Positions 1 to 23,401 of a stretch of 64,000 bases of DNA are shown in pieces. This stretch comes from Vitrella brassicaformis CCMP3155. Lineage: Eukaryota > Protista > Chromerida. The stretch covers positions 124,001 to 188,000 of the forward strand of contig CDMY01000897.1 of the NCBI GenBank assembly GCA_001179505.1, in the 5' to 3' direction. The position numbers were made by a program, and so were the translations under genes. Position 1 is the first letter of the stretch, and every line of letters begins with the position of its first letter. The notes under the pieces were generated by a model, which was not told the DNA's origin, did not search any database, and saw only the letters and a list, made by a program, of their open reading frames with translations.

Positions 1-3000
1 TCGACCAAGGGAGGTGAGGAGTTCTGGGTCAAGATTGTGCCCGCGTTCCTCTTCGAGAAGATCAGTCTCGACGCCGTCAACTCCTTCCTCAAGTCCGGGC
101 ACTTCAACAAAATCGTCGGCCTGCTTGTGCAAGGTAGGTGGCCTTTCCAACAATCCGCCGAAGCCACAAACGGCAGCAAAGCATTTGTGACTGTCCAACA
201 GGCAAGGATAATCGGTTCCGCGCGTCATCGTCCGTGCTGTACAGTCTGAGTTGGCTGCACGGCGTCATAGCCAACAGCAACATGACCGAAGAGCTGCCCG
301 AGTTCGACCCTGCTAATGTCGACCTGCTGCCGTTGCTGCGGCTCACACGCACTCTTGTGCAGAAGTGCGCCACGCTGAGGCCCGATGCCAAAGAGTTGGA
401 ACTCATGAGGGAGCATCTGTCAATCACTGAGGTACAGAATGGTTGATGATGAGAAGTGATGGCTTCCGTCAAATTCGTTTGTATGTGTCATCGTGTCACC
501 AGAGAACTCTCTATCGCCTGGCCCAGATATCCAAGTTCCGGACAGCCCTTCTTGGCGGAGAGGACTGGGAGAACCTTCCCCTCTTGCTCGAGATCCTGCA
601 GCACCGCCTCACACCCGAATGGATCGCAGCCATGACGCGACTGCTGGCAGTCCTGCAAGACCATGACCCTGCCAGCGTCCCGTCTGTCTTTTCAGCGCTT
701 CTCCTGTACGTCCCCGAGAGGGCAGAACTGATGAGTGCCAACCGTGCCACCGCAGTTGGGCACGTGCTGAATGCCTATGGCCGTCTGTTGGAGGAAGGCC
801 TCATCCCCACGTTTCTCGAAACGTTCCGGCGGGGTGGCTTCACGAGTGTGACGGGATCAGGCCCCATGTCAAGTGCGCTCAGGGGAGCCGTCGACAGCAC
901 GAAGCGGTCTGACGTGAGCCACGTTGTAAACATGCTCACGTTCCAGGAGGACACGGCCGTGCGGGCCAGCTGTCTTCGAGTGCTGCGGGCGCTGGGCACA
1001 CGGAGATACCGCGAGCAGCCGATTCTATCTATCTGCCGCCTGCACAACCTGTCGATGCAAAACGCAGCCGCCAGCTTCGCAGCAGCCAAGAATCAGACGG
1101 GCGAGGGACTTCCATCTGCCGGCCTGGCATACCCCCTTCCGTCTGAGTGCCTGGTCATGCCTCCCTTCGCCTACTCTGTGTGGGTCTACCCCGTGCAGCC
1201 CATCACCCAGGCCGTCAAGTCGCAGTTCGTCTTTACTCACGTGTCAGACTCGCATGCAACCTGGCCAATCAGCCTCGTCGTGACACCCATCGGCACTCTG
1301 GGGGTCCGGATCGGCCCCGAGTCGGCGCCGAGCGGCCGCACAGAGCTGGTGGTTAGGGAACTGCAGTGGTCGCATCTCGTGCTGGTCGTGGAGCGCAAGA
1401 AGGCCGTCGCGTACGTCAACGGCATCAAGGCGTGCGAGGCCCACCTAGCAGCGCAGGATGCTCAATCTGACATCTCTTCGACTCAGACCGCACGGACGTC
1501 GAGAAGATTAGGGGGCGTGTGCTATGTTGGAGTCCCTCCACCGGATGTGGTGGGTTTCAGCACGGCGAACTGGTTCTTTCCGGGATACGTCTATAGGCTG
1601 ACATACCATGATGAAGGGCTCGCGGCGCAGGTACACGAAAAACGAAAGAATGCATGACTTCGGGAAGCTTGCCAACATCACTTGTCCTGTCTCTCTCACA
1701 GGACGTCGAACAGATCTACGACATGTCAGTAGCCAACACGTCAAGCCTGCCGTCCGCCGAGGAGCTCGAGGCCCTCGAAGGCCATCGCCGCACCCTCACC
1801 TTCCCCAGTCATCGATTCCTGCCCAACCCACTCTACTATGTCACATCCAGCGACTCGTGGGACCAGCTCAGCCCAGTCATCAGAGACACGCTAGCGTCGC
1901 GAGCTCATTTGACTGACGAAGGGAGAAGCGGCCCCATAGCTGAGCTGCGAAGAGAGGGCGGCGGGCTGTTTGCAACGCTTCTGGACCTCGAGAAGCAGAT
2001 CAAGCCGTACCAACGCAGCTATGCGGCCAACTTCTCAAGCCTCGTCGGCCCGAGTGTGCTGCGCCTCAAGATCATGCCAGACTCGCCCGAGGACTCGGAC
2101 TTCACTATCGAGACCAAACTGAGGTGGCGACAATACCTCGCGCAGAACGAGAACGTGCCAGTGCAGACCATCCTTGCGCAATCTGGATCGAAGGGGCGCT
2201 TCGACGCGGGCAAGGAGGGAAGACAGTGCCTCTTGACACTGGAGACAGGCCCGATGCCCGCGGATGGCAGCGGCATGCCGGCAGGAGACGGCGAGCGAGG
2301 CTGCTGGCAGGTCGTGTTCCGCTACTACGGCTTCGAGCACCGACTGGCCATCCCGCCGATCACTGGTGAGTGGCTGCACATCGTGGTCATGAATGACGGC
2401 AGCATATGTAAGCTGGCGGCCGACTGGGACGGCAAGCAGCAAGCCATTTACGAAGGCCAGCACGGCACCAGTGACGTCCGGATGAACATGAACTGCACCA
2501 TCGGGTGCGACTTTGACATGACGACCGACAAGCCCCTGCACCCCCTCATGTGCGACATGGCCTTCCTTCGCGTCTGGTCTGGGCCAGAGGAGCCCACCAA
2601 GTTGGTGGAGTATGGGTTGCCGACGGCAGAGCACCCCTACGTGACAGCCACACTTACGGACGTCGAGTGGTCGCTCGTGCCATTCGTCAAGCGAGACGGA
2701 AAGGCCTGTCTCCTACAGCTGTAAGACAGATGTACACAATGCATCTCACATTGTCAACACACGTCTTTGTCTATGTCTATCTCCCTGGCTGCAGTGCACC
2801 AAGACGGTATCACCCGCTGAAGGAGGACGACCGCGAGCTCTTTCCTGGCGTTGCTCTAGTGTGCAGCGACGCAGACATCCCCGGCCTCACAGTGTGCCAC
2901 GCTGACCACTCGACCGACTTTTTCCTCGCATCGTCCGCAACCCGAAGCAGAGCATCGCCTCTCGTGACCGGCGCGAGAGACAAGGGCCTATATATCGGGG

Positions 3001-6000
3001 CACGAGAGCTGCGCGAGCAAGCCTTCATCCACCAGATCGAGTGCTGCATCCACGACAGCGGCCATCGATACGCCGCTGAGAACATGGTGCAGGACCACCA
3101 GCGGGCCAGGAAGCTGCCCGAGTGCTGGATCGGCCTCTATGCTACAGAGGGCGGCAGCATCGACAGCAAGCAGCCCATGTACAAGCTGAACCTCGTCGAG
3201 TGCCGCGCGCAGCCCGACCAGAGGCTCACCACACCCGTGCAAGACTCACGCCTGGACGATGAGGCAGGCATCAACTCGACATTCAAGCAGCTGACGCGGC
3301 GGGGCTGCACCGTGACGCTCCAGCTGTGTTTCGCCGATCAAACGCTCTGGGTGTCAGCGTTTGTCAACCGGAAAATCGTTCACTCCGCGTACATTCGCCT
3401 GAATGCCTTTGCCAGGCCCATCACGGCCGTGGTGCCGGCCGCCTTCGTGTCTGACCGCAGCCACTGCATCCACTTTCTGCCCACCCTCTTCACCAGGCTG
3501 TCGATCGGGGCGCTGGAGGTGCGCCTGCCCGACAAGGGCACCACGAGGAAGCTGGCCGCCCATCTGCCGCACTACATGATCCCGGACATCTCTGGCAAGG
3601 CGATGCCTCCCAGGCCAGAGACATTCACGTCGGTCTTCACGGTCTACTGTCCTGTCTCGGCCAGCGAGGCCAAATTCTCGCACCACGACACCGACAGAAA
3701 GATCTTTCAACGAGTGGCGCTGCAATACGAAAACGCGGCTGAGGGTGGGTGCAGGGGGGTTTTGGAGGTGCTGCGTGAGGGGCTGCGAGTGAGACGAGGG
3801 GCAGAGATGCCCGTGACTTTCCCCGAGGATGCCATCGTCCTGGCGGCCCTGTGCAGGAGCCAGAGTGTGTGGCGTCAAGTCAGCCAGGAAGGTGAGTGCA
3901 TTCGGGGGCCCGTGTGCTTGTCTAAACATTGATGTCACCCGTCTCTTGTCTCCGATGCCCCAGATACCCTGCTGCACGACTGTCTGGCTGAGATGGCGAC
4001 AGTAGAGCTGAGAGGGTCTATCGAGCAGGTCTTCACCGCTCTCAAGCAGAAGGTGGCCGTCGTGTCGTCCCTGCAGATCCTCATCCGCATACAGCACACC
4101 CACCGGAGCCTCGTCGACCAGGGCTACGACCGCATCCTCAGAGACATCTTGCGGGAGGGGCTGGAGGATCTGCGCGACCAGGTGTCTGCCATCACGAGTG
4201 TGACCAACAAGATGGCCAATCGCGAGCAGCGCATACAGGGCTGGAGGATCAAACGGATGGCAGCAGAGAGCATGTACCGCCTGCTCAGGTGAGACATGTT
4301 GTCGGCATCCAATTTCTGAGTCACTTTCTTGTACGATCCTTGTCCGTGTTTAGATCTACGTCGACGTACCTGAAGCCTCAAGTGACTCCAGGTAGGCAGC
4401 CGCACACAAACCAGGGATTCGACATGTCTTGTCGCTGTGTGTGTTGTGATGTCAGTGCTGATGGACGACTTCATGCGTCTGAGCCAGGGAGTGCCCGGCA
4501 CATCCGTGGACCAGCAGCTCATCCGAGACAGAATCGCAGACTGCAGGGAAATCATCGCGTCAGACCTCAGCCTGGTAGGCTGGGCAGGCACACATGGACC
4601 CACGAACAAGTGGAAGCAGAAACACATTCACGTTTTGTCAGTTCATTGAGGCCTTAACGACGGAGCGTCACTTCCAACAGCTGAGTCCCGGCCTGCTGAA
4701 GAGCGTCCTCAACACTCTGGTTTTCATGATCGCCTACGATCCCTTCCCCGTCAAGATCGTCGAGTCCGACCATAGCCCATCGAAGCTCAAGGGCCTCAAG
4801 ACGGGCAAGAACCCATGTGAGGTCAAGGGCGCGTCGCGTCTTGAAGTCACATTCGACAAGGTGACGACCGACAGACGGCGAAAAACCACTCTCACGCCAA
4901 GGACGATACACATGATGCGCATCGTCTTTTCAGGGTTTTGAGATTATGCAAGGGTGCGTCAACTTCTATGTGGGCAGCGACCTGGTGGCCAAGTATGGCG
5001 CTCAACAGCACGCCACACCCGACTACGTCCTCCGCATCCAAAACGACTCATTCGATTTCGAGTTCATCGAGCGGCCCGACACCACCAGCACGTCTGGCAG
5101 GGGGGAAGGCGGCGAGCGGTTGAGTACCGCGGGAGAGTGCAGGGGGTATCGCTTGTTGGTTCGAGCCTTCTACGACTCGGATGACGAGCCGCTGGTGCTC
5201 AAGAAGCGGCAGAGCATTCTTGAGAAGAAGGGATTTGTGTCTGCGCTGGTGGGCATGCACTCGGACTTCTCGGGCGGCGGGAGGGACAAGGAGCAGCAAG
5301 AGATAGATGAGTCGATCGAGAACATCCTCTCGCACCTCACAAATCTAGGTATGCTTGCACACTCTGAGCGTTTGTCGCGCGGTCCTTTTCACACGCGTGT
5401 CTTCTGTGGATATCTGCAGGCCCAGACCCGCCACACACAGCGATTCTTTCCGAGCCCCGCGTGTTCCGACTGATGCAGGGCATCTTGGAGCATCGCCCCG
5501 ATCTGTCCAAGAGCTCGGCCTCCGGCTCGCGTCAAACCTCTCCCCTGCTGTCCAAGCACGTGTCGGCTGCTCGCCTCTACTACGGCCTGTCCAAGACGGA
5601 GGAAGGGCGGGCATTCTTCGCCAATCATCGCAAAGTCCTGGATTTGATCGTCAAGATATCTGCCGAGGCGTCAGACGAGAGCACGGTGGACGATGAGGGC
5701 CTGGTGCCCTACCCCCACACGGCGACCTGGTTCGACCGCCCCTACATCATATACACGCTGACCTCTTTCTCAAACAAGCCTTCCACGTGGTTCCTGCCGA
5801 CCAAGCTGACCTACATCGCCCCCAGCCAGCCCACTGCCCAGCTGCAGTGCGACTTTGGACGGGGCGTGACGGTGTGGACCATGTCGTTTCATTTTTTCTT
5901 GTTGGCTGACCTGGGAGAGGAGGCGGGCAAGGGGGGCTCCACGCGATCGTTCATCATCTACAAGGGCACGGGGCCCACAGACGTGCAGATCGCCATCGGC

Positions 6001-9000
6001 TTTGTGTCGACAGCAGAGTCGGCTGGTACCACCCGCGGCAACCCCCTGTATCTCCACTGGATCACTCAAGTGAGAAGCGGTTGCCCGAGCAGAGAGACAG
6101 GCAATCCGCTGCTGCTGTTTGTCCCCTGTTCAGGATCATCCGATTGAGAGGGTCATTCCGGCCGCGTCCATCAGCCTATACGAGTGGAGCCACATCGTTG
6201 TATCGCTGGACGACAAGAACCTCACGGTCATGAAGAACGCAGATGTGGTCTTCCGCGAGCGACTGGACGCACCCATCCCCTTGCAAGCATCGTCCATCCC
6301 TGATCTTTACCTCGGTGCACTCCTGTCGCCTCACCCGATTTCATGCAAATCCTCTGTTTGATCCATGTAGGTTGCCCCGAGTGGGTTGAGGAGAGCGCCA
6401 CGGTGCCCCACGGGTGGCTCTACAGTTTCTCGGTCTACTCCAACCAAGCATTCGACCAAGTCAACGCACAGGCAGTCAAGTACAGAGAAGAGAGCGCTGC
6501 ATGGGCCTCCACACCTGTCCAGCACACGGTGTCGGACCTGCACGGCATCGACGATGTTCCCGACCCCATCCACATGCCGATCGACACCATTAAGGTGTTC
6601 GACTGTCGTGACCAAGTGGCCTCAGACGAGGGCATTGCTGTGCTTGTCGACCTGCTGCGAAGTGACCTGGAGACACAAGTGCAGGCGGCCGCCGATGCGC
6701 TCAAGAATCTTGCCGATCCCACAGTGGCGTCAGGCATGGCGCGGATAGTGAAGGTGCTGCAGAAGTCTGGCGGGCGCGGGTCTCGAGTGCAGCTGCTGGT
6801 GTCGGTGATGGAGAATACAACCAATCCAAAAATCTTCGCTGCCGTAGCTGAGCTGGCAAGCAGCATCCTCAACTGGGAGAATCCGCCGGGAACGCCTGGT
6901 CTTGACATCGAAAATAGGGAGCTGCTCATCTCGAAGATCCTGCGGCCGCTGGAGAAAGACAAGGGAATGAAGAGAGCTCGCGAGCCAGTGATTGTCCTGC
7001 AGCTCCAGGCGTGTCTCGGCAACCCCCGGAACGCAGACATTCTGGCGCGCGACAACATGGGCACTGTGCCGACATTGTTTGAGTTCCTGCAGTCGGAGAA
7101 CCCCACGACGGTCGCCAGGACTCTGCAGCTGATGCTCAACATGCTGCAGCACCCTAAGGGCGAGGCCTGGGCCAAGGACATCTGCTCCAGCGCCAACCTC
7201 AAAACACTCATGCAGCGAAGGGAGTCGGGGGGCTCGAGAGAGATCAAACAGGGATACGAGCGCCTCCTTAACCGGGTCAGTTAGCTCATTCTGATCGATC
7301 GATCGATCGGTGATAGTCATCCATTTGTCTGTTGTCTTTCAGGTGTTGCGGGTGGCAGACTCTGCGACGGTTATGAACACACTGATCAACATGGAGGGCC
7401 TCAGCCCCGAAGAGGAGCGCTTCGTTGCCCAAGTCCTCTACTGCTCCCTCGCTGTGGTCGATGCCTCCAAGAACAGCGGTCCCATCGAGGTTCCACCGCC
7501 CCAGGAGGCGCGAGAGAGCGTCGACGGCATGGCGCCAGTCAAAGTGCTCACGCTTGCTGGCGCCCCGGGCATCAGCGTGTTTGTGCAGCCGATGGTCAGC
7601 ATGCGGGCCCTTGGATCGCGAGTGTACCTGCGCGTCTACACCGACTCGCGAGAGCCGGTGGCTAACGATCCCAACGAGGTCTACTTGTGGGTGGCGCCAT
7701 CTGAATCGGACCTGGAAAGGAGCAAGAACTGCATCATCATACACGTGAGTCATGCCCACAAGATAGCTCTGCAGTATTGTGAAAACGAAGAGAACTGCAT
7801 GTGTGCAGGCTGTGATGCGTCCACACGACCCCCGTGAGGGCGGCAAGGGTGAACGGTGGTCGACGGGACAGATCCACGTCCGCGACGTCCACTTCAGCGA
7901 CAAGGTCTACTACCGGCTGCAGTACCTGGGAGGTAGTAGGCTGCAGCAGTACTACGAGCAGCTCGGAGACCGCAGCGGCCAAGACCCAGACTCACCCGAC
8001 GAGCCGCCACGCCTGCAGCTCATGGCACAGGCACTGGTGAGCCTCAAAATGGACGTCAATGTGGTTGTTCCTGGATTGTGTGTCTCTGTGCTTGGACAAC
8101 AGGACATGGTGATCAATCTTGAGGCCAGAAGGGCTCAGACAAATTGTCAGGAGGTCTTCAAGGTGCCCTTGGGTTTCCCGCGCAACCGCACGGTGGCGTC
8201 GTGGATTCTGCGTCGTCTGGAGGAGATCGAGGATGACATCAGAAAGGAGATGGAGAAGACCAAGAAAGAGGACGAAGAGGAGGAGGGTACGCGCCTCAAT
8301 CTAGTGTGGATCTGTATAGCACGGCAGAGTACATAATGTCTCCTGTTATTGTCTCTTGATGTATGTCGACGTCAGGGCACGAGGGCATCAAGGAGGGCAA
8401 AGAGCAAGAGGAGGAGGCCGAGACAGAGGTCGACGAGTCGGGACTCATCCTTTTCCACCATCGCCTCTTCCGCGCTGCCGGCATGGCCAGGGCTGCCGGC
8501 CAGTCACTGGATGTTCTGCGAGACGGAGAAATAGCCGCATCGGGGCAGGACATCGACGCCGAGGCCCGTGTGGAGGAGCAGAAATCGCAGAAATCGACTT
8601 TCGCATCGTCCTTCAGCCTTTCTGTGGAGGCCAGAAGAAAGCGAGAGGTGCAGCGGTGGATCGCCCAGTGCCTCACGGCCATCACCAAAGGCAACCCCAG
8701 GAAGGTGGCCGAGGACGCCTTCCGCAACCGCGTGCTAAAGCTGATCGACTCGACGGATCCCTTCATCTCACAAGCCATCTGCGAGTGCCTCAACGTCATT
8801 CTCTCGACCTCCTCCCAGCAGTCGTCCGTTTTGTCGGACGAGAATGTGCAGAAGCTGTTGGCGAGCATGGCCAAGGCCTTCGAGCAGCCAGACACCGCAG
8901 AGCGGTCGCTGCTGTCGATGGCCAACATCCTGCAGCGCTACGTGGAGCACATCTCCGCCGGACAAGTTCGGGTTAGCGAGCTGACGAATGAGAAGGCCTC

Positions 9001-12000
9001 TGTGCGAATCGTGCGGCCGCTGCTGGAGCTGTTGAACCGATACGGCAAGTCAGCTGTCTTCTCGATCATCCGGCAGGGCATGGCGCACGACATCATCACT
9101 GCAGACAGCTTCATGTCCGTCTCAGCTGCCAGAATGGTCAGCAAGCGATCGACAGCGAAGGAATCCGCGGAGACGGAAAAAGCGGCACAGCTAAATTTGA
9201 TGCTCGCACCAATGGAGAGGGCCGTCAAACACCTCACGTCCAAGACGCATATCGATGCCACCGCGGCGTATGAGGACCTTGAACTGCTGTTCAATGCCGC
9301 ATCGGTGCTCAAGAACATCTGTCGCACAAGCAGACGAGAGGAACATGCCCAACTGATTCGTTCGGGAATTGTCGGCCGCCTCCTGTTCCTGCTTGACGGG
9401 CTGGGACAGGTGATCCCCAGATGCGCCGATCGGCGACATTTCGACTACGTCGTGCCCGACAATCTGAAGACGCGCGAGGGCATCTTCGAGCACCCAACAT
9501 ACATCGTGCTGCCATACACAGCCAACGTGCGCATCTTCCGGGGCGCGTGTGCGGGCGTCTCCAATATCTGTCAGTGCCTGAGCAACCTGCTCAAGACCGA
9601 CTGCCTGGCACTCATACAGATGCTGTCGCACAACGATGGCGAGGGCATGCAGGCGCTCTACGGCATCCTCCCCGAGGTGAACGTCGATGCCGGCTGCAAC
9701 GATTTTCAGATCACGTCGCGGCCGACCGGGATTGAAGAGATCCGCCTGATGGTGCAAGCACTCATGGCCATCAGCCGTTGCTGCCTGCGGAAGATCCGAG
9801 CGCGAGCGGTGGAGGTGGTGTACCACTGTCTGCACCCTTACGGGCCGAAGGTGCCGCAGTGCCCGGCCAAGGTGCAGGACGTGGTAGAGCCTTGTCACGA
9901 CTACCGTATCTACTACGGCATGCAGGGCGGCGACCAGGCTAAAGACCATCCCGACCCGATTATCCATCTGCCATCGAGACACGAGCGACACTTCACATTC
10001 ACCATGTGGACGCGAACCGACAAGCCGTTGAGGACCGTCATCGATGTGGTTTACGACTGTCATTCCACGTCGATGACCAAGCTGGACCTCGACACAGCCA
10101 TCGAGAAGCACGAAGATAAGGGTCCCATACGGGCAAAACTCAAAGTGCTCAAGAGACAGGACACATACTGGTTCCGATACGAGGAGGAGCGGATCGCCGG
10201 ATACCTGCAGCTGCGGCGGGAGTGGACGTGGCACGGCAGAGACACACAGGCGGTCAAGCTCCTCACAGGGCACAAGGGATGGACCTTCTTCGCATTCCAA
10301 GTCAAGGTCATTGAAAGCCCCATGAAGGGCCGCCCTGACGACGAAAAGACCACAGGTGAACTGAGCCGGAGAAGACGCCATTGATTTAGATGCACCGGTG
10401 TGTCTCTGTGTATATATGTTTGTGTCTCAGCGCATCGTGGCGAGCTGGACTTCCAGGACACCCATGCGACCGCCTACCTGAAGTGTTTCTTCTTCGCCCC
10501 GCACGCCAGATCATCTGCCACGCAGATGCCCAAGGTTGATGAGTTCGAATTTGGCCACCCCAAATACGAGTACTTCAAGCCTGTCGACACGCGAGCCTGG
10601 AAGGCGTCGGCGGCCCTTGAGAGGCGCGACTCACAGATGTCCGACGAGGTGCCTGAGGCGCGGCCCAGCACAATGGTGACTGGCACACTGCCTGGCGTGA
10701 GGAGCAGGGGAGAGCTGTCGGCCGAGCGCGCCAAGTCTGGCATGTCGCTGGGCGGGGTCACCTCCGCGACACAACAGAGGATCCAAGAGCTGCAGAGGTA
10801 TGTAGACACGCTTGGGTGTATATGCATGTTCATCGATCGCTGGCTCTCTCTTCCTCGGTTCTTGTTGGTCGTGCAGCCGCGGTCTCGACTGGCCGACACA
10901 ACGTGAGCCAATGGAGGTGTTCATGCCCCTCCTCTTCCCCTTCCAGATGGAGAAAGACGCTGTGGCCGGACTGGTCGAGAAGTCCCCTCTCACGGTGAGC
11001 GTCCCGGTCTCCTTATGATCGGTTGACGCTTCTGCCTCCTGTTTCTCTGCATGACTTCGATCAGATCCGCATCGGCGAGAAGCGCGAGGAGGTCGTGAAG
11101 GCCATCCGCATGCCCGACGTCTTCGTCACCCACGATGTGGTGCAGCTGCTCGCGCCCTTTTGCGAGAAGCACATGAGCACCGACCTCCTCTCGCGGCTTT
11201 CGTGTCACTGCCTCTACCTCCTCCTCACAGCATTCGCCCGTCCACAGGGCACCGACGCAGGGGAGCTGCAAGACCGGCCCGAGGCAGCCGAGCTGCAGGA
11301 GCGGCTGCGGCAATTCACTTTCCTGCTCGTCCAGTTCCAGCACGTCATCACCAACACGCAGCGGCCGGATGAGCGGCTCGGGGCTCTCAGGATCGTCTGT
11401 GACGCACTCTGGAAGCTCTTCACGCGGGCTCAGAACTTTTACAGCGAGCAGGAGCTGGCCAACCGGCAGAAGAACATCGTCAGCGGCCAGGCGGACAACT
11501 ATTACGACATCCCATTCGTCGAACGGATCATCTCCCTGCTGGCCGAAGTTTGTGTGAGGTAAGCTGGAACACAAAATTACAGAGGACGCCGAAAATCATG
11601 TACGCCGAAAATCATTACAGACGGGACGGGAGCGCCATTCGGCCAGTCCAGGATTTCATAGCACAGGAGCTCCTTGTGGTTCACGAGAAAATGGCCATCC
11701 AGCGCCGTCCCGAGCCAGAGGCATCACACAACATCTACACGCGGTTTCGACAGCAGCGGCTCAAGGACGCCATCAGCGAGATAGACGACAAGCAGGCCAG
11801 CAGAGTTCAGGCCATCCTTATGGTAAGGCAACACAGAGACAGAGACACCTCATTGGTTGATACGTCTTCTGTCTGTCTGTGTGTCCCTTGTCAGAAACTC
11901 GTCGGCAGTCTCAGCGAGAGTAGCATCTTCACTCTCATCCGCATCGGCACATCGATCTTCTTCGAGCCCGCAGAACTGAGCGGAGTCGACGCCGAGTTCC

Positions 12001-15000
12001 ATCCGAGGGCCGACGAGAGGAGGATCCTCTGGGCGCACGACCGGTCGCAGCCAGAAAGGGGCAATGGCGGAGGTAGAGCCACATTCGCCACGGGATTCAC
12101 CAGGAACTTCAGCAGGTACAAGTGGATTCATGGATCCCCCTTTCTTATGTGCAAGTGTGTGTCGCTTTGTTCTGACCTTCATACAGGCTGATGTCCGGCA
12201 GCGTGACAGATGAGGACCGGACTGAACGATCAGTGGCCCTCCGCTATCTCTATCACTCGATGCTTCGTTTGCTCGCGGCCATATGTGCGGACCGCAATGA
12301 GACCAACTCGCTGCGGCTGCGGCAACTCATCCCCCTGCCGGTGGTGCAGAGCCAGCTCGTGCAGCGGGAGGTGCTGGGCTACGCCGGACACAAGTTCGAC
12401 TCGCCTGCCAGGATGGCCAGAGAACTCATCTACCAAAAGGTCCAATTGAGGTCTGTCACAATCAAAGTCTCTGCTTGATTTGTTTCTTTGATCAGACCAT
12501 GTTGGCTCGCTCAGACACCGGTCGACTCAGCCGAGCTCGCAGCCGGGCGTTCTCGCGTGCGTACTCGCAGATCAGTGGGCTGACTAGTCTCGGTGATCAG
12601 CTGGAGGGCGAGGGCCCGCGAGACAAGGCCGATCTGTCAGACATGAACGCCGTCTCAGCCAACATGTCGCTGCTGCTCCATGCTTTCCTCAATCAACCGC
12701 CTTTTGCTGACCAGTCGCACCGCAGCGTTGTGAAGCGCCAAGTCTATCTCGATGGGAGCAGAGCCGACGACGAGGCAGTGACAGAGGTGGTCACTGGCGG
12801 GATGCTGGTGATGAATGGCATGACAATGGAGGACCTGAAGCGACTCTGCTGGATGTGCTCGTGGCAAATGGCGTCGCTGGCCCTGCTGGTCACCGACTTG
12901 TGCGACAAGAAGCTGCTCAAGAAGGCGCCCAGGCAGACCTACACCGACACTTTGTTCGGCTACATCCGGGTGCTCGCACAGGTGATGGCCAAGCTGATTG
13001 GCCTCGGATTCTTCGAGTGCTTCAAATCTGAGGCGGAGAAGTCGTCGGATGCCGATGAGAAGCGGTCCGCAATGCAGATATACGACATGTCGCACGTCAT
13101 CGATTTGTTCACGGCCATGCACAAGGTGCAGAGCTGCTGGGACACAGTCATCTCGCCCGAGTCGAAAGCAGCAGTGACGGAAATGTGCCAGCTCATCAGT
13201 GTGGTGTGCTCGCTCATCATCAACAACCACATCGACCGATTCATGTTCTCGTTCAACTTCTACGTGCCTCCGAGAGTGCGGGCCAGCTTCCCTCCTCGCG
13301 GCCGCAATGTTGCCCTGGAGCGCTTCCAGCAGATGGGCGTCAAGCAGATCGACGAGAAGTGGATGCAGCTGGACCCGATCTTCAGGGAGACGATACAAGA
13401 GCTGACCATCACCTCACTGCCGTGGGAGCGACCCGACGCCACCGAAACCGAGTCGAGGCGCAACCTGTCCCAGTTCGTGCTTGCGCTGCTGGATTTCGCT
13501 GCAATGGGAGACTCCGCTCTGGCTATTGAGGTGACTCACTCAACGTGCACAAAAGGCATTCTTCTCGTTCACAGTGCCATGATTCCTGTCCTCTTTCAGT
13601 CAGTGAAGCTCCTGTCCCATCTGTGTCGGCGCCGGCGTGACTTGATACAGGCGCTAGACGATCTGCAACTGCTGGACACGGGTGATCGGGAGAAGTTCGT
13701 CGCTTTGGAGCCCTGGGTCAAGGAGACGGCCGTGGCCATCAGGGGCATCCAGAACGTGGAGCGAGTGCTGGAGAAGGAGAACCAATGGATAGTCCAGGAG
13801 AAACTCAAGAGCTACACCGTGCCATCTGAGAGCCTGGTGAGCGGGTGCAACGGATACATGAGTGATCGACACGTCTCGGCCTGAGTGTCTAATGGTCAGG
13901 GCGGAGGCGCCTGGCACGAAGAGGACCTTGCTGACGGGGCTGTTGTCCAGGTGGACGAGGAAGGAGCTGCCAGCTACGTGCAGCGCAACCAAACGGTCGT
14001 CATCATACTGCGATCGGCACACATGGCCGGCCTGCACGAGGAAATGAACCAGGACTTTCACATCAGAGGTGTCTCGAGGCGGCGAAAAGCGTTCGGTGCT
14101 GAGGCGGAGGACGTCAAGTTCTCGACCGATCCCCTCATCCTCGTGGGTGCAGCACCTGGCAGAAAGGTGAATAGTCACACACTCACTCAGTCCACCACAT
14201 CAGCTCGCATTTCTCTGACGCTACAGACGCACATCGAGGCCACTGCGGGCCAAATTCCTCTTGGCTTCACCGGTGGCGACGAAAGGGGCCACCTGTATGT
14301 CAATGGCGCTTTGTGGGAGAGCGGCTTTGGCGGCTTCACGACGGGCAGCTATGTTGGTGTGGAGCTGGACTACAGTGAGGCCACCAACCCCGTCATGTAC
14401 CTGTATGTCGACGGCCTGAGAGTGGCGGTGATTCCTCGGATCGAGTCGGAGCTCGTGCCTTGCGTGGGTCTGTCTGGAATGGGGCAGTCGGTCAAGATCG
14501 CCAGAGGACGGCCCAGAAGGGGAAAGGGACTCTTGCTGACAGGGGAAGACGTGAGCACTGATTTCACAAATTTCAAGAGAATCGATGCGTCTCTTTTCCC
14601 CTTGACTACATTTATATGCGTGCAGATGTCTGAGGAGACCTACACTCTTGACTTGGAGTACGATCCCGCCAAGGAGTGTTTCTTCCTCTCATCAACGGGC
14701 GCCACGCAGGAGGTGCCTACAGAGGAGGGCGCGGAGGCCCGACGGCTCCTCTATGAGGGATGGAACGCAGGTACACGGAAAGAGACACACATGCACAAAG
14801 ACAATGTTGTCCTGTGTGCGGCAGCGTATTCAACAACGAGCGGGTCTCGTCGGCAGGAGTGGCTCGACAAGATCAAGGCATTTGGCAAGGGGCCCCGCTT
14901 CATGGTCAACCCCCGCAAGAGCCACACCTGGTGCCTCAACGTCATGACCCTGTCGGACGCATTCATCGAGCGGGCCGAAATCACACGAGGCATACAGGCT

Positions 15001-18000
15001 GCGTCGCGCAAGGCGTCCATGTCGGTCTTCACCGACCGCACGGGACATCTCAGGCGCAAGGTCGTGCGCAACTGGGAGCCTGTCATCCCGGCAAAGGAGG
15101 GTGAGACATCAGCACCGGGCGGCGGCAATGTGACCGAGGTGCGCACGGAGGTGTTGCCTGAGTTTGTATACGGCGCCCGGAAGCTCTTCCTGGTCTTCAA
15201 CGAGCTTGACGCGCACCCCGTGACGCCTGAGACGGACCCGAAGGGTGTGAAGGTGCGGCTGTACCTGACACACATGCTGCCCATCAAGACGGAGAAGGAC
15301 ATGCTCATGAAGCTCTTCGACCACTTCATATCCATCTGCCAGCTGGGCAACGGACACCTGCTCTACTACCACAAAGTGGAGATACTCGCCCTGCAGACTC
15401 TCTCCTTCGTCCTCTCCCCCCTGCCGCACTTGCGTGAGTCTATCCTGGACGACCCCAGCAATCAGCATCTTGCCAGCGAGGACCAGCGCACGCCTTTCCA
15501 CTCTGTCACCCGATTCCTGCGGATCTTCTGCAGCCGCAATCCACAGTATCGTTCGCTGTTCATCCGTCCGGACGTTTTTGAGCTGCTGGTGACCTGCATG
15601 GCCAAGGGATCCAACATGGGCGCGCACATCGGCGTCAGCTCCTTGATGGTGGAAATCTTCGAGAAGAACCCCCACGCCAAGGACTTCGTCACCCAGCAGT
15701 TCGTCAACCAGATGTTGGACGCCCTCCTGCATAACTTCATGACACGGCCCTCGGTGGTGCTGGACTGCATCCGCGTCCTCAACTCGATCGTCACTACTGA
15801 GCGCGACTCCATCAGGAGCAGAGACAACGGCAACATCATCCTCCTAGAACTCCTGAAGCGCAACTCAAGGGAGGCGTCCGATCTGCCATGGCTACCCATC
15901 ACCATAAACGGGTTCGGCATCGTGTCGTCAGCCCTCAAGGAAGACCAGAACGTCATCGTGAGCCAGCTGAGGCGCCTGGCCAATCTGGAGGAGGCGAGGA
16001 AGGCCCTGGCCAAGAGGGGCGAGGAGATCATGTACGAGGAAGAGGCCGACCAACAGAGGCCCCAGCCGCGCCAGAGAAGGGGCGCAGTGCGGTACTCGAG
16101 GGCCCCCAGGCCGAGCACCGCCCGATCTGAGTTTGAAGCCAGCGGCACATACGAGCAGGAGGGCACGCTCACCATGGCTGAGGAAGCGTACGACGAGGAA
16201 GAGGAGTCTCTGAGCCTCAAGACCGCTCTCAACCTCTCACAACTCTTCGTCACGGCCTTCCAGCTGCAGCTCATCGAGTTGGTGCTGCGTTGCTCCTCCT
16301 TCGGACTCAACAAGACCGTCCTCCGCCAAATATCCAACAACATCCACGAGATGCAGGGCGCCCTCGAGCACAAGGGCAAAAAGGGCCGGGCAGATGATGC
16401 GGAAGAGGCGCTGCATCTGCTTAGGGCGCGACAGAGGTACTTTGTGCAGATTGTGCTGTGGCTGTCACAAGAGGAGACGGAGAGCGAAGTGCCGCTGGTC
16501 GTGCAGGACGCCTACCTTCGAATGGCCATCTTCCTCTTGAAGCCGCACGAGATCGAAGAGGTCCTCGACACATACTGGGAGGACGCCCTCGACAACATCG
16601 GACCCACAGAGGTGAGGAAGAGACACACAATTCCGTGAACCTGGGAACAAGCATGCTTCCCGGAACTCTCAGATGGTGCTGCTGCTCCTCCGTTTCTTCG
16701 AACGGTACTTCGCGAGTTTCGCCAGCCAAGCACATCTGTTCAGCCCCCGCATATCGACGGTGGTGGAGACGATCGACACGCGCATCTGCTGGGAGCGGTC
16801 GCCGTACTTTGTCCGTGACCACATCCTGCTGCTGTTCATCCAGCTGCTGCAGATCTACAACCGGCAGAAGACATGGACGGCTGGCTTCCTGGGGCAGGGG
16901 TACATACACAGGGGAGGCAGCATGGAGAGACCGCCCCCACAGACAGCCATCAAGCATAAGTTCAAGTAAGCCAAACAACACATACATGCACAATGCATTC
17001 GTGGATCCGGCGACACTGACTGCGGGTGGGCATTTGTTTGCGTGTAGGGCGACGTTCCACGGTGAGGGCTTTTTCGGAACATCACCTGCTGACGTCACGC
17101 AGGAAGAGACGGCGCTCATGCTGGCAGAAGGGGCTGCCCTCGTGAGCACTGACCAAGAGACAGATGAACCAGACATCACCCCCTCTCCCGTGTGCTTTCT
17201 GTCCAGCCCGAAGAGCAGACGACCGAGGCCAGCACGGGAGCCGGCGGCATCACGCGGCAGGAGACAATGGAGGAGGAGATCCAGTCGGCCGACAACCTGC
17301 TACTGGCGGGGCTTTTCAAGAGCCTGCTGGACCAACGCAAGTGGCGGCACGAAGAGTGGGGCATCAAGCAGGAGATGCTCATCGTACTCCGCATGCTCAC
17401 AAACATGAAACTCACACGCAACCTGGTTGGCATACGAACATCCACCCAACACCTTTCTCTCCTTCGAGCTTGGAACAGCCCTCTTCTCCTTTCATCTGTC
17501 AGCCGACGGAGCCCCAGGGCTTCCAGGAGACCACAGAGCTGCGCAACTGCATTGCTGTGCTGGAGGGCCGCAAGCCACCGTCACCCACAGAAAAGGAGGA
17601 AGAGATCGAGGAAGTGGCGGGTTCACCCACTGCTGGCCCGCCAGGGGCGCCCAGCTCGGCTGGCGTCGATGACGAGCTGTACACTACCCTTACTCAGCCG
17701 CTGCTCACAGGAGGAGGCCCGGATCGTACCCAAGTGGGCATCGGGGGGTCGATTGAGCTGGCGGAGAGACGGGGGCCGATGGCCGTGCCGGACACTGTGG
17801 TGCGTGTGGAGGGGGCCGACAGGACACACAGGAGACGGCGAGCCTCAGGGACGGACGCCGGTGGCCCTGGGGCGGAGGAGGACGACTATGCCGACCTGCT
17901 GTATGAACTCATGGAGCTGCCCGATCAGGTAGGGACATGGGAGATAGACATGCAGACGAGACATGGCACGATGATCGGCTGTGTGCGTGTGTGCACAGGA

Positions 18001-21000
18001 GCTGAACGAGCGGCTGAACGTCGATGTGAACTTGTGGCGAAGGCAGCAGCTGGTGCATCCCACGTTCTATCTGGACCACACGGCAGACAAGATATGGAAC
18101 GTCGAACAAGAGCTCCGCAGGACCCTCTCGAACGTACGCAAATACCACGGCACCAGTAGCCAGATGTTTCTATACATGTGCATGTCCATGCATCGGTCAG
18201 GTGAATTTAGAGCTGTGGAACTCTCAGTATCTGCTGATGGAGTTCCGGTGCGAGGTACACATCAACATCGGAGCGTCACGTGCCGTACACGGCATCTCCT
18301 CGGCCCTCGTGGCACAGCAATCCGACAGGTGGACAGCGGGGCGTCAGGGGGGGAGCAAGGCGACGACTGTTCCATTGAATTCACGTTCTGTGTGTGGCGT
18401 CTGCGTCTAGCCAAGGAGCGGGTCAGCCGACGACGGTTGATGCGATGCCCAGGCAGTATCAGCTGTACTTCGAGATCGAGGCCAACGGAAAAGACACCCT
18501 CTACCTCGAGTGCCTCTTGCCATGTAAGCACTCCATTGATCTACTGAACACGGCGCGTCTGCTTCCAATGCGATGTATCCATGTGCGTGTGCAGCCGAGG
18601 AGTCTCGGCGCAAGATCCGCCTGCAGCTGCTGGGAGTGTCGAGGCTCACCTTCCGCACCCGGTCACTGCATATGGATGCCGTGACGTCTACAAGCGTGAC
18701 GGTGGCCAATCCACGGCTGATGGTCCTGTCTGCGCCCAAGGCCTTCGACCCGGCTGTGGTGCGGGCCGTTGTGGAGGAGGGGCGGTCGCACATGTCGACC
18801 AACTACAGGGAGGGGTCCAAGCAGGTCATTCACTCGCTGCTCCCGCAGTACATACACATGGCCGTCGACATTATCGAACGAGACACTCTCGGTCCGTGGC
18901 CAATCACGCACACAGGCACGTAAAGGGACACGAGCACACAGGTCTCTCTCTGCCTCCTCCTACCAATCAGACTGGAAGCAGCCGCGCTCATCAGGGCGTT
19001 TGAGCGTGTCGGAGGACGCTCAGCTGGAAAAAGAGCACCGGGAGGTGGTCAATATGCTCAGCAGGGCCCTCAGCCATGTCATGAAGAACGAGATGCTCAA
19101 GCGACTCGACGTCAAGGATGAGGAGCAGCTACGGCTCTCGGCCTCAAAGGACCTCTACCCCGTCTTTGAGATACTGACTGAGAAGGCCAGGCCGGGGACA
19201 GACGTCAGTCACCCTACAGCACACACACACAATTATACAACCCTAATGCATGTATCCGATGTCGCCCTTTTGCTGTCTCAGGCGCCGGACCCTGCTCTTC
19301 GTGACGTGCCCGCTCTGTTTTGGGACGTGGAGCCCCACCGGCAAGCCGAGACTATGCTTGGCTGGATCCTCCAGATGTGCCACGTGGTGCGTGTGGTGGC
19401 GTTCCTCAAGGACGACTCGAGAATCGACTTCAGCAAACAATGGGTATCCGAGCGCACCACAGACATCTTCGCGGCACTCCTGTCGACAGGGGAGGATCGG
19501 GCGGCGCGTGCGTCCTGTGTGGCACTCCTCAGCATCCTGCAGGTAATAGAGACGTGCTCATGACATTCACATAGCCTGCTACTGACATCTGTCCAATCAG
19601 GAGCTGCTGGCGCGTGATGAAGATGTGGAGCGTCGTTGGCAAGAGTTCAAGTCCCTCGCGCCAGAGCATGACGTCCTGGAGCCGTCGTTCGCCGTGCAGA
19701 AGGCCCGCTTCCTCTGCCCCTTTTCGTGTCCTGACGTGGGCCCTTCCTCTGTGCATCTCGCCCACCACCTGCGGATGTTCTTCGAGAAGGCTCAGGTGGA
19801 CGTCATCGATCCGATTCGCCTGGTGGAGGTGCTGCTGCAGAGTGCAGACACCACACTGCGCTTCGAGTCGTACAAGCTTGGCTGCAAGATCTTGCAGGAC
19901 GCGCAGCTGAACCTGCAGAATGCCTTTGTGGACGACCCAGACGAGAGAGATCAGCTGCGCAAGTGTTTCCGCTACGAGTTCGAGTCCTTCCCAGACAGGT
20001 TCAACGGCACGCAGCACCAGTCCAACACCGAGGTGCTGAGCATCCTCCTGCGGTTCATCCAGCACCTGTGCGAGTTCCACAACAGGGATCTGCAGGAGTT
20101 CTTTGCATACCAGCTGGAAGGCTACCAGCTGTCACTGCTGGCCGCTGAGGGTGAGATGCTGCCTGGCCGGCAAACCCATCCGGCGGCTGCTGGTGCCCTC
20201 GCGATCGAGGATATCACGGAAAGGGGAGAGGGCAAAGAGCCATCGGCAGCAGAGACGCCAGAGAACCTCGTGCAGTGGAAGTGCGAGACGCTAAAGAGCG
20301 TAATCAGCAAGATAGTGGCTGACCAGGAGTGGCAAGTGTCCATGGGCAACCGCAGGGCGCAGTACATCCTCCTCCAACAAATATTTGAAACCGGCACAGA
20401 GATGATTCAAGGTCACACACTCTCACACCCCCTCACACACATAATGGGCTGCATCAATGGTGCGTTGCTGTTGTCCATTGATGTTTCAGGCCCTTGCACG
20501 CAGAACCAGCGCATCTTCCTTCGCAAGGGCATCTGTCGCGACATCGAAAAGCTGTTCGAGCTCCAGAGGAAAGACGAGGAGGCGTTTCGTAACCTGATGG
20601 CGGACAACGAAGACTTGCGCGAGTCCTGGATGGACCTCTGCAAGACCATGCGGCTGATGGAGATCGCCATCCTGCGGTTCCTGTACTCCCTGCTGGAAGA
20701 GGATCTCCTTAATGTGGGCGACGACAACTTCCTCGAGAAGCAGCAGAGCATCCTGCAGCACAAGAACGAGACCATCCGGCGAATGGTGGAGGAAATGAAC
20801 CCCCGCACGATGTGCAGGAAGATCATCACTCATTGGAACCTGAGCTCCGAGGGCGCCGACGACCAGATGAAGGTGCCGCACATCGACGACGCCGCTTTTT
20901 TGCCCACCACTGAAGGAGACATAATCCGGCCGAAGACGGAGATAGAATCTAAGGTGACCAGACCGACCAGAACACATCCATCTGTGTCTTGCCCTGACTG

Positions 21001-23290
21001 GCTGCGGCTCGCTGTTCGTCTTCAGGTGTATCCTCTGGCCGAGCAGGAGGTCCATTCGCTGGAGATCTGCTTCTGGTGCTACTCACTCTTCGACGCCATC
21101 TACAACGAGTCCCTCCTGGCCTACAATGTGGAGCTGCCGCGAGAGGTGCTCATGACATTCCACTCGGAGGGCCCGCGGTTCCAGAAGGGCGACTGGGCGG
21201 CAGCCAAGGCCAAAATATACGACTTCTTCAAAGAAAGCGTCACCAGGAAGGTACGAGAGCCGTCCGTCGAGTGCGTGTCTCGTGTCTCATCCCTCTTACG
21301 TGTGTAGACGCACGCCAAGTACTTGCACTATCTTTTCGGGCGTGTGGAAGTGGTGCGCGGCACACGGCTGCAGCGGCTGTACTTCCTGGTGCCCGAGTCT
21401 GTCAGAGCCCTCAAGGACCACTCACTCGTTAAAGCGTGGCAGGAGTCCTTCGTGCAAGAGGTCAAGAGGTCGTCGCCCGAGGAGAAGATCGATGGCTTTT
21501 CGGATCGTGTGATGAGCGAGTACATCACATTCGTGGAACACCAATACGAGCTGCTCAAGCGCCCATGGCCCCTCAACAGGGCGGGAGAGGTCATTTCCTT
21601 TTCTCTCAATGCCATTATCTTCCTGACCATCCTGATCAACATTTTCCTTATCGCCTTCTACAACAAGGCCTACACCGCCGACGATCCGGAGGCGCAGTGG
21701 CACTCCTTCGGGGAAGAGGCGTGGAAGAGCATCCTGTTCAGCACACTGTCCTACAGCCATTTACTGTTCTCGCTCTTGTGGACGCTGTTCTATATCGTTT
21801 CCTATAGTGGGTGGACGATGTCGGCGCAGATGCAGCACTGGAAGGCAAACCACCCGAAGCTGTCGTATATACTCACTTACTGGCCGATCCGCTTCGCCCT
21901 GAGTCTGTACTTCTTCTTTGCGGACAATGTGCTGCTGTATCGCTTTATATACGTGACCTTCTCGTACCTGGGCTGCCGAGTAAGGTTCTGCCCATTTGCC
22001 TATCCGTCGGTCCCCATTTCTCTGATGTCTTGTGTTTCAGGTGAATCCGCTGTTTTTCTCTTTTCACGTGATCGACATCTGTACTCACTTCCAGATCTTG
22101 CAGAAGGTCATGGAGGCCGTCATGAGCACCTACACACAGCTCATGGGTCAGTTACTGAGGTGGATGGATGCAGGGGGATGCAGACACACTCCAAGAGCAA
22201 ATCGTGTGCATGCGTGTGTGTGTGTGTGTGTGTATGCGCCAGGTACGATCTTCCTGGGGTTTTCTGTGTCGTACTGCTTTGTGGTCGTCGGTTTCATGGC
22301 ATTCGGACATGGATATGACTTCGCCGATAAGGACAATTACGAGTGAGGGAGTGAGAACCGCCACACGGCCCGGCTACTCGTGTCTCTCTGCTTATCTGCT
22401 TCTCAGGTGCACGAGTCTGGTTACGTGTCTGAAGGGCCATCTGGACTACGGTTTCCGCTCCGCGCCTTTGTGGCGTGAAAGCCACCAGGACTGGACGACC
22501 TTTTTCTTCGACTACTTTTACTATTTGTTCATCATCCTCATCCTGTCGGCCATCATCAGCGGTATCATCATCGACACCTTCGCGGAGAAGCGAAACGAGG
22601 CCGCTGCCAAGAGCGACGACATGCTCGGCAAGTGCTTTATCTGCTCGCTTGATAAGACGCTGCTTGAGAGGAAGAGAATACAGGTATGTGGTGCGGTGCC
22701 CCACCACCACACCCACACACACAGAGAAAGAGAGAGAGAGAGAGACAACGCAACACACGCCACGCCCCCCCTCTCCCCTCCCTCCCTCCCTCCCTCCCTC
22801 TGTGTCTCTCTCTGTCTCTCTCTGTGTGTGTGTGTGTGTGTGTCAGTTTTCCGACCACATATATGAGGACCACTACATGTGGGCGTACGCGCGTTTCCTC
22901 CTCTACCTGCACCAGACCAGCGCAGCCGACCTCACCGGCCCAGAGAGCTACATCAAGGAGCAGTGGCACAAGAATGACCGCAGCTTCTTCCCACTTGGCC
23001 GCTGCATGGCGCTAGAGGCACGGGAGCTGTCCGAGACGGCCTCGCTCATGGACAGGGCCGTCACTCTGAAGGATTTCGAGGGCTTGCGTGCGAGCATGGG
23101 TCGGCTGACCGATGATGAGGAGACGATAAAGCACAAGGTGGATGTGCTGGATGGGAAGATCGGCGAGCTGGCCGGCAGGATGGCCGGCCTCATCAGCGAA
23201 CAGAAACGAATGATGCAGCAGCAAGGTGGGTTCGTCCGTGAACGGGACACGCCCATGGAGGCGCAGGAGCTTTCTGTGTGCGCATTCGTG

Positions 23291-23326
<36 letters not shown>

Positions 23327-23401
23327 TGGATGTGTGTGTGTCTATCAGAGATCATGGACGTCCCTGCTTCTGCACTGGGGCCGAGGGACTCCATCAGATA
23401 A
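1..23401 (+). CDS. Giant multi-exon IP3R/ryanodine-receptor-superfamily Ca2+-release-channel-like protein (5' end outside the window; roughly 6000+ aa encoded here)
   Basis: Reading frame is open from base 1 (STKGGEEFWVKIVPAFLFEK). The GT-AG junctions I checked join in frame (e.g. introns 134-201, 433-502, 1631-1701, 7276-7342, 14167-14226) through to TAA at 23399-23401. The C-terminal part has IP3R/RyR hallmarks: RIH-associated LLRFIQHLCEFHNRDLQEFF and TEMIQGPCTQNQ; GRVEVVRGTRLQRLYFLVP; several TM helices; pore helix ECTSLVTC; inner helix ILSAIISGIIIDTFAEKR; zinc site KCFICSLDK...FSDHIYEDHYMWAY; coiled-coil tail. Confidence 0.88.
1160..1625 (+). other. LamG/concanavalin-A-like jelly-roll domain 1 of the channel
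   Basis: FAYSVWVYP...WSHLVLVVERKKAVAYVNG...CYVG...FPGYVYRLTYHDEGL follows the LamG pattern (F-T-x-S-x-W, W-x-H-V-x-V, Y-V-N-G, G-x-I-x-x-V-x-I-Y). Confidence 0.7.
2060..2600 (+). other. LamG-like domain 2 of the channel
   Basis: GEWLHIVVMNDG...WDGKQQ...CTIGCDF...CDMAFLRVWS pattern. Confidence 0.6.
3110..3480 (+). other. SPRY-like beta-sandwich (tentative)
   Basis: GCTVTLQLCFADQTLWVSAFVNRKIV...VVPAAFVS...IHF resembles the SPRY core (G-D-x-I-G-x-x-L-D...F-Y-x-N-G...Y-P-A-V-S). Confidence 0.4.
5860..6460 (+). other. LamG-like domain 3 of the channel (split by introns)
   Basis: WTMSFHFFL...EWSHIVVSLDDKNLTVMKN...DLYLG...HGWLYSFSVYSNQAF. Confidence 0.65.
6620..7275 (+). other. Armadillo/HEAT-like helical repeats in the channel
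   Basis: GIAVLVDLLRSDLETQVQAAADALKNLA and GTVPTLFEFLQSENPTTVARTLQLMLNM match ARM repeat spacing. Confidence 0.6.
9960..10500 (+). other. Possible fourth LamG-like domain
   Basis: RHFTFTMWTR...KGWTFFAFQV...GELDF pattern; weaker than the other three. Confidence 0.4.
11430..12450 (+). other. RIH (RyR/IP3R homology)-like domain
   Basis: ANRQKNIV...ERIISLLAEV and YLYHSMLRLLAAICADRNETNSLRLRQLIPLPVVQSQL resemble the IP3R RIH segments ([39 protein letters not shown]). Confidence 0.55.
14230..14520 (+). other. SPRY/B30.2 domain in the channel
   Basis: LGFTGGDERGHLYVNG...GFTTGSYVGVELDY...MYLYVDGLRVAV...LVPCVGLSGMGQSVKI. Confidence 0.7.
20030..20700 (+). other. RIH-associated domain
   Basis: ILLRFIQHLCEFHNRDLQEFF and QQIFETGTEMIQGPCTQNQRIF match IP3R [20 protein letters not shown] and QTLESLTEYCQGPCHENQ. 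Confidence 0.85.
21590..22900 (+). other. Ion-transport TM/pore region and C-terminal C2H2 zinc site of the channel
   Basis: Hydrophobic helices, pore ECTSLVTCLKGHLDYGFRSAP (GFRSAP at about 22450-22467), inner helix GIIIDTFAEKR, CFIC...H...H. Confidence 0.85.

Follow-up and report, generated by a model that had tools for sequence, protein, structure and literature searches.

Ryanodine receptors (RyRs), together with the receptors for inositol 1,4,5-trisphosphate (IP3; IP3Rs), make up the two classic channel families for internal Ca2+ release, and Ca2+ release of the caffeine/ryanodine type has been reported for dinoflagellates. Among alveolates, the CRC channels of Paramecium are said to measure about 2,500-3,100 residues, with no LamG/ARM extension reported; some of their families reportedly lack an IP3-binding domain, and some are said to reside in the cortical alveolar sacs. 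The similarity of these Paramecium channels to the animal receptors is reported to peak in the C-terminal pore region (Ladenburger and Plattner 2011, as cited in PMC5490149). A reciprocal BLAST survey recorded IP3R/RYR as present in Vitrella, an entry that may correspond to the gene described here, and as absent from Toxoplasma, Plasmodium and Cryptosporidium (Mallo et al. 2021; PMC8572010). We analysed a stretch of 64,000 nucleotides (nt) of Vitrella brassicaformis CCMP3155 (contig CDMY01000897.1, positions 124,001 to 188,000), called the window hereafter, and all coordinates are given in its numbering. According to a splice-aware dynamic-programming model, window positions 1-23401 on the + strand belong to a single gene, the 5' end of which lies beyond the window edge. 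We consider it likely that this one gene encodes a giant subunit of an IP3R/RyR-superfamily channel, and that it represents a separate branch of the superfamily, one that has turned up to date in dinoflagellates and V. brassicaformis alone.

With the animal RyRs (RyR1-3; P0038-P0044) the predicted protein shares a homologous pore, the S6 gate motif (IIDAF in RyR, IIDTF in the window family), the C-terminal zinc finger and the Ca2+-binding E/H and E/Q motifs of the central domain. In both, a huge cytosolic alpha-solenoid shell carries beta-sandwich inserts of the ConA clan. In the window family, however, GGGIGD is deleted; the family forms a clade of its own, and its members gave no Pfam match to SPRY, the RyR repeat, MIR or Ins145_P3_rec, the RIH matches staying sub-threshold. 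The SPRY domains, RyR repeats and N-terminal trefoils of a ryanodine receptor proper were thus not found, nor did any profile match the RyR N-terminus. The sizes differ as well, the window protein having at least 6,617 and probably more than 8,500 residues, compared to about 5,000 in RyR.

The IP3R (P0037) is the best animal match by E-value (8e-20), and shares RIH_assoc, an identical IIDTF and very close C-terminal motifs (H..E.H.MW, TGPESY). It differs in that the window protein is two to three times longer, that the filter of the latter is deleted, and that its visible part contains, in recognisable form, neither MIR nor the suppressor and IP3-binding trefoils that stand before RIH in an IP3 receptor proper. 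A lead, to be taken as such, points to the BEACH proteins (neurobeachin, LRBA, Alfy): by its language-model features, exon 8378-10354 falls closest to the clusters of their N-terminal module of ARM, Laminin_G_3 and DUF4704 (0.85-0.87), and the relative P0029 has a faint DUF4704 match (E 0.08). Both are solenoids with an inserted ConA-like domain, but no significant sequence or structure match was obtained, and the window protein has no BEACH or PH domain. A full-text literature search returned no paper describing the architecture, the filter deletion or the size of this family, and no well-described family with this exact architecture, which would have spoken against an earlier sequence-only reading of the same DNA. 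We conclude from its sequence that the window gene is real and conserved, a giant of the IP3R/RyR superfamily that departs from the canonical type, and by its visible N-terminal features neither an IP3R nor a RyR.

The C-terminal channel and its Ca2+-sensor motifs

Homology to IP3R/RyR channels extends over the last ~900 residues. When the family profile was compared with RyR using hhalign, the RyR pore and C-terminal domain (4664-4915) were matched with a probability of 99.7% (E 5.6e-27) and the RyR central domain (3721-3960) with a probability of 92.8%, while nothing significant was matched outside these last ~900 residues. Pfam recognised RIH_assoc (PF08454) at ~20021-20119 (E 2.3e-7; 31.1 bits, above the cut-off of 28.5), and both RIH_assoc and Ion_trans in relatives. 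Animal IP3R/RyR proteins were recovered at E 8e-20 to 1.6e-13 with the dinoflagellate query P0005, of which these matches cover 4-8%.

On the + strand, the RIH_assoc/central domain (20021-20600) is followed by a transmembrane pore domain of the six-helix type (21308-22683), which was delimited by hhalign, hydropathy and alignment. Strongly hydrophobic segments are found at 21578-21671, 22134-22308 and 22495-22588; the last is S6, with the motif GIIIDTF at 22561-22581. The C-terminal domain (22633-23401) comprises the zinc-finger motif CFIC ... HIYEDH (22633-22644 ... 22856-22873), LTGPESY (22931-22951) and a helical tail. The sequence-only reading had recognised an IP3R/RyR C-terminus here by its RIH_assoc domain, pore, GIIIDTF and CFIC..H..H, and this is borne out by Pfam, motifs and hhalign.

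According to published structures, the activating Ca2+ site of RyR1 is formed by E3893 (in C-E-G-H-N), E3967 (in T-E-Y-I-Q-G-P-C) and T5001 before G-Q-E-S. The corresponding motifs are all kept in the window family, as C-E-x-H-N, T-E-x-I-Q-G-P-C and T/N before G-P-E-S. In the window, the first is LCEFHN (20066-20083) and the second is TEMIQGPCTQNQ (20396-20509), which is encoded across the intron 20412-20489, both on the + strand; the third is found in LTGPESY. Ca2+-activated gating is the mechanism that we infer with the best support.

A pore without the selectivity filter

The pore alignment took in nine relatives besides the window protein, along with two RyRs, one IP3R and a protist IP3R-like protein (P0045). 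In 10 of the 10 family members, the selectivity filter GGG(I/V)GD is lost by a conserved 9-residue deletion, and DYG(F/N)RS(A/G)PVW replaces G(V/L)R(A/N)GGGIGD and the acidic residues. The loop of the window protein, without GGGIGD, reads DYGFRSAPLW (22444-22473, + strand). The pore helix, the glycine hinge of S6 and the IIDTF gate motif are retained throughout the family. Since the filter is a characteristic feature of the superfamily and not the basis of homology, the protein is still filed there, where it is best regarded as a divergent branch and not as a typical member.

The shorter loop, and the lack of GGGIGD and the following acidic residues in all ten members, are what one would expect of a protein that derives from a channel but has ceased to release Ca2+, either with another ion selectivity or as a non-conducting scaffold or sensor. 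On the other hand, conservation from this organism to dinoflagellates extends to the pore helix, the S6 hinge with IIDTF, the zinc finger and the Ca2+-sensor motifs, as a working gated pore predicts, and the loop of P0045 is likewise divergent at the filter position. We regard a loss of Ca2+ release as unlikely.

The cytosolic shell and its upstream extension

The cytosolic part is an alpha-solenoid with several ConA-like beta-sandwich inserts, all features described below being on the + strand. The first insert, at 1163-1459, is Laminin_G_3-like (PF13385, E 8.2e-6; 26.5 bits for a cut-off of 27.6), and Laminin_G_3 was found at the matching position in P0062 (E 1.6e-5), in P0067 (E 4.4e-5) and in an open reading frame (ORF) of the related DNA sequence L004 (E 0.027). 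A second module of this type may be encoded by exon 1702-2720, for which 67 of the 100 nearest clusters in language-model space were Laminin_G_3 (score 0.96, recognition 2795); this exon had no Pfam match, and an alignment profile of the LamG exon gave nothing significant against PDB. Exon 2804-3891 has weak SPRY/Neuralized-like features (0.92-0.93) at a recognition of only 1903, which is below the reliable range, with no match in Pfam or in the PDB profile search. An Armadillo repeat, also present in the relatives P0029 and P0031, was matched at 6601-6717 within a long alpha-solenoid (PF00514; 27.3 bits, above the cut-off of 20.6). Thus, of the ~11 kb of jelly-roll, SPRY-like and ARM modules first read from the letters, the LamG_3-like domain and the Armadillo repeat stand, and the SPRY-like part is reduced to weak language-model features.

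The 1,980-nt exon 8376-10355 was modelled with AlphaFold2 from a 7-row alignment (predicted local distance difference test, pLDDT, of 56). It is predicted to form an alpha-solenoid at ~8378-9830 (helices in residues 1-485) and then a beta-sandwich-like module at ~9959-10306 (strands in 528-643). In P0031, the counterpart of 10.4-13.8 kb is predicted to begin disordered and to be helical from there to its end (pLDDT 44). Foldseek searches with both models returned only generic ARM/HEAT solenoids and no domain mapping onto RyR or IP3R.

The region called channel in the automatically generated dinoflagellate models starts at 11065-11822, where a weak RIH-like signal is located. The first RIH-like domain, previously placed at ~11.5 kb, was recovered only as sub-threshold RYDR_ITPR (PF01365) matches, and only in relatives: in two of ten family members (best E 8e-4), and at residues 935-969 of P0028 (E 5.6e-4; 19.9 bits for a cut-off of 22.3). 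Pfam gave no RYDR_ITPR match in the window exons. An alignment profile of the RIH region gave nothing significant against PDB, and single-sequence PDB searches with three large ORFs yielded a marginal IP3R3 match only (E 0.064).

A Pfam scan for trefoils was run at E up to 0.01 for all ORFs and up to 1 for ten larger exons. It gave no match to MIR, Ins145_P3_rec or other trefoil families in any scanned ORF or exon of 1-23401, and none of MIR, Ins145_P3_rec, SPRY (PF00622) and the RyR repeat (PF02026) was matched by Pfam in the scanned relatives or in the window. The secondary structure ahead of the RIH-like region is predicted, with low confidence, as helical with one beta-sandwich-like piece.

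Relatives extend at least 2,200 residues upstream of the equivalent of the window start. In L004, the upstream ORF has 2,093 amino acids (aa), of which only the last ~285 match the window, and P0063-P0066 add up to 611 residues past the stored end of L004. On another contig, ORFs of 824+, 2,005 and 576 aa abut a P0031-type ORF, the gaps being 20, 143 and -13 nt. These upstream ORFs imply family proteins of at least ~8,700 residues; the full-length window protein probably exceeds 8,500 residues, and the part of the gene in the window would be the 3' four-fifths or so.

An ordinary trefoil N-terminus could therefore be sought upstream, the gene being open at window position 1. The protein would then be RyR-like and less non-canonical, its LamG/SPRY-like modules being an expanded form of the RyR SPRY region; RyR likewise has ConA-clan (SPRY) beta-sandwiches inserted in alpha-solenoids, and some fragments of the family were named RYR1 automatically. 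Yet ~1,570 upstream residues of relatives (the upstream ORF of L004, and P0063-P0066) gave no Pfam match to MIR, Ins145_P3_rec, RYDR_ITPR, SPRY or the RyR repeat, and the far N-terminal pieces gave no profile-profile match to RyR or IP3R N-termini. As neither RyR repeats nor SPRY were matched by Pfam anywhere in the scanned family, we hold a RyR-like protein of this kind to be distinctly improbable. What is observed is that the visible ~5,700 N-terminal residues, and the ~1,570 upstream residues in relatives, are without a recognisable MIR/IP3-binding trefoil; the absence of such motifs, noted earlier from the letters, holds for both in Pfam and profile searches.

One gene or two

In the present gene model, 48 exons are separated by 47 GT-AG introns, which measure 42-163 nt with a median of 71 nt and have a CAG acceptor in 42 of the 47 cases; its splice-site matrices were trained on a first splice-aware model of 42 exons. 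The coding sequence amounts to 19,854 nt or 6,617 codons, from a frame open at position 1 to a stop at 23399-23401, and the longest non-coding gap inside the gene is 163 nt. Codon usage was scored as log-odds, with homology-supported stretches as the training set, and the score was positive in some frame of the + strand, almost without a break, from ~600 to 23,300. In 300-nt bins, it exceeded 15 in 51 of 77 cases on the + strand, compared to 9 of 77 on the minus strand. The GC content over 1-24 kb is 54-61%. Coding potential and the 48-exon model together agree with the single continuous spliced frame of more than 23 kb that the sequence-only reading had described.

Exon borders in this model are provisional. 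Doubts concern the intron 1432-1560, since the LamG Pfam match scores higher when the intron is translated through, a micro-exon of 5 nt (12496-12500), and the last two exons, which lie alongside (TG)n repeats. The final ~45 codons are uncertain because the 3' introns contain (TG)n/(CA)n microsatellites (22147-22242, 22684-22846 and 23226-23348), and it is these introns, translated in frame, that appear as runs of CVCVCV when ORFs are translated raw. Single stop codons split long same-frame ORFs at 3930-3932, 10382-10384, 13882-13884 and 21305-21307; each of the four sits within a short intron of a length divisible by three. Several further introns are in frame and free of stops, such as 20412-20489, and are easy to miss. 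Outside the gene, an assembly gap of 300 N is found at 55332-55631.

The comparison with relatives argues for the unity of the gene. P0031, from a Symbiodiniaceae-like organism, is an uninterrupted ORF of 5,345 aa, of which 32 near-identical copies were found on contigs of up to 367 kb; by the tree, its source is a Durusdinium-like symbiont. It aligns with model residues 1210-6570 (window 4122-23132) in one high-scoring segment pair at 33.6% identity. Identity is 31-45% in each 400-residue bin along the model, so the N-terminal extension is as constrained as the channel core. L004 and L010 are colinear with model residues 6-6616 on a single strand. P0067, a gene model of Symbiodinium necroappetens, covers model residues 118-2054 and crosses the junction at 3.9 kb, and P0067 and P0036 bridge candidate gene junctions.

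At that junction, the LamG part is joined to the rest by an intron of 72 nt (3892-3963, + strand; GTGAGT...CAG) with an in-frame TGA at 3930-3932. The residues that flank it are conserved on both sides; those on its 5' side are SVWRQVS in the window and QIWRFVS in L010. In L010, the frame is open from the equivalent of window ...FPEDAIVLAALCRSQ to an intron-like stretch of ~120 nt, which has three in-frame stops and a CAG end 12 nt before the called ATG.

The alternative is that two adjacent genes of conserved order, one for a LamG/ARM protein and the next for the channel, are separately transcribed or matured, for instance by trans-splicing of a dinoflagellate-type polycistron. The Polarella annotation is of this form, as it splits the locus into an upstream gene of 3,685 aa and a channel gene of 3,331 aa on the same strand. 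Moreover, the ORFs of three relatives (P0031, P0034, P0035) are called from one shared methionine, equivalent to window ~4104-4150. As a true start or gene border this methionine was rejected once the upstream DNA had been read, because the sequence before it is intron-like, with a CAG acceptor and a conserved ALFE/D ahead of the M, and because the Logan contigs break in a (TA)n repeat, with no spliced leader. In the window itself, only the canonical 72-nt intron parts the two halves. A border at window 11095, the equivalent of residue 1 of the Polarella model P0005, was rejected too, being crossed by P0028, P0031 and a Polarella ORF (L002 14146-15804); P0028 and this ORF run unbroken through window 9896-11685. 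The raw sequence suggests that the split annotation reflects fragmentation. Two genes are thus highly improbable, and channel and N-terminal extension very probably form the single giant gene first proposed, on the combined basis of comparison and splice structure.

Some further observations concern Polarella. In L002, one ORF of 1.66 kb covers the equivalent of window 9.9-11.7 kb, while in L001 introns spread this stretch over more than 10 kb; the difference would reflect either different paralogues or a retro-copied version. The 3,685-aa model lies at L001 1-8491, directly upstream of P0005 and on the same strand. It has an RRM_1 match and faint EF-hand and Laminin_G_3 matches, and nothing in the 8.5 kb of L001 upstream of P0005 resembles the window significantly. 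This model probably represents an N-terminal portion of the giant gene, perhaps joined to a second gene. In P0024, a Polarella model of 3,852 aa, residues 226-304 match DUF3431 and the N-terminal part is unmatched in the window; this DUF3431 part is probably a neighbouring gene fused by annotation.

A pseudogene or an assembly artefact, to which the uncertain exon borders and the last ~45 codons running through a (TG)n repeat might be taken to point, is practically negligible, as the 6,617 codons contain no unavoidable stop, identity to the relatives is even, and 8300-14200 is identical, with zero differences, in two independent DNA assemblies, whose contigs over this stretch are unspliced, 28-32 kb long and without joints.

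Phylogeny and distribution of the family

A maximum-likelihood tree built on the last 1,000 residues sets the family apart as a separate clade next to RyR and next to IP3R, with a support of 100/100. The window protein has a branch to itself, which meets two dinoflagellate paralogue groups in an unresolved fork. This place outside the dinoflagellate clades would fit a relative of apicomplexans, as would the short introns and a GC content of 58%. At least two such paralogue groups exist in dinoflagellates (P0003 and P0013 compared to P0031 and P0025), and Symbiodinium is present in both. A protein from a JGI metagenome (P0012) is a further deep branch.

An exhaustive HMMER search with the RIH_assoc exon yielded 23 proteins among 1.84 billion representatives. 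Those with a named source come from Polarella, Symbiodinium and Polykrikos, and the others are marine metagenome or metatranscriptome sequences and Logan fragments. A word-based search returned dinoflagellates together with distant animal RyR/IP3R. The dinoflagellate fragments of the family (P0005/P0024, P0025, P0026, P0036, P0063, P0066 and P0067) have 546-3,852 residues, and bear automatic names such as 'RYR1', 'itr-1', 'IP3R' and 'RyR/IP3R Homology associated domain-containing protein'.

Neither the HMMER search nor the word-based search recovered an apicomplexan or ciliate relative. The sequence-only reading had seen in the gene a seed for diverged apicomplexan homologues; none was among the 23 HMMER relatives or the word-search matches, and the apicomplexan IP3-receptor puzzle is left unsolved for lack of such a relative.

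Four fragments (P0001, P0002, P0006, P0009) are 91-99% identical to the window protein over the equivalent of 19.6-21.3 kb, and P0001 comes from an ENA metagenome assembly, on a contig of 2.5 kb. At least one environmental sample thus appears to contain a close relative of the window organism.

Proposed function

The interpretation as one gene for a giant channel subunit has to be weighed against several points. Ca2+ permeation is not assured, because the acidic ring to which RyR and IP3R owe their conductance is lost with the deletion in the pore loop. The RIH domains are sub-threshold only, the true N-terminus lies outside the window, and both AlphaFold2 models are of low confidence, which leaves statements on the N-terminal fold weak. 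Dinoflagellate annotations divide the locus into two or more genes, and the single RNA run contained none of the words of the gene, the other five runs being DNA assemblies.

If the protein is the channel subunit that we propose, it would form tetramers in an internal membrane, either the endoplasmic reticulum or the cortical alveoli. Opening would be brought about not by IP3 but by cytosolic Ca2+ (Ca2+-induced release), by partners bound to the LamG/ARM shell, or by both. Cations would then pass the pore, with a selectivity that may differ from that of RyR and IP3R. Gating by some other ligand or partner, as suggested in the sequence-only reading, is pure inference.

A bolder picture is possible, though doubtful. 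The protein would be the largest ion-channel subunit known, with at least 8,500 residues and a tetramer of more than 3.5 MDa, and would belong to a myzozoan-specific third branch beside RyR and IP3R. Through its LamG/SPRY-like/ARM shell the channel would be coupled to cortical membranes (alveoli, plasma membrane), either mechanically or via partners, conduction through the filter-deleted pore would differ from that of every RyR or IP3R studied, and the channel would be the basis of the caffeine/ryanodine-type Ca2+ release of dinoflagellates.

The family appears to represent a third, deeply separate branch beside RyR and IP3R, conserved between dinoflagellates and a chromerid. Its combination of features is unusual: the protein is predicted to be far larger than RyR and to carry other N-terminal modules, and it has lost the filter and kept the Ca2+-sensor and gate motifs. 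As such it would be a natural experiment that shows for which purposes a channel requires the GGGIGD filter and the trefoil ligand-binding core, and for dinoflagellates and chromerids it is a concrete candidate for the channel of store release.

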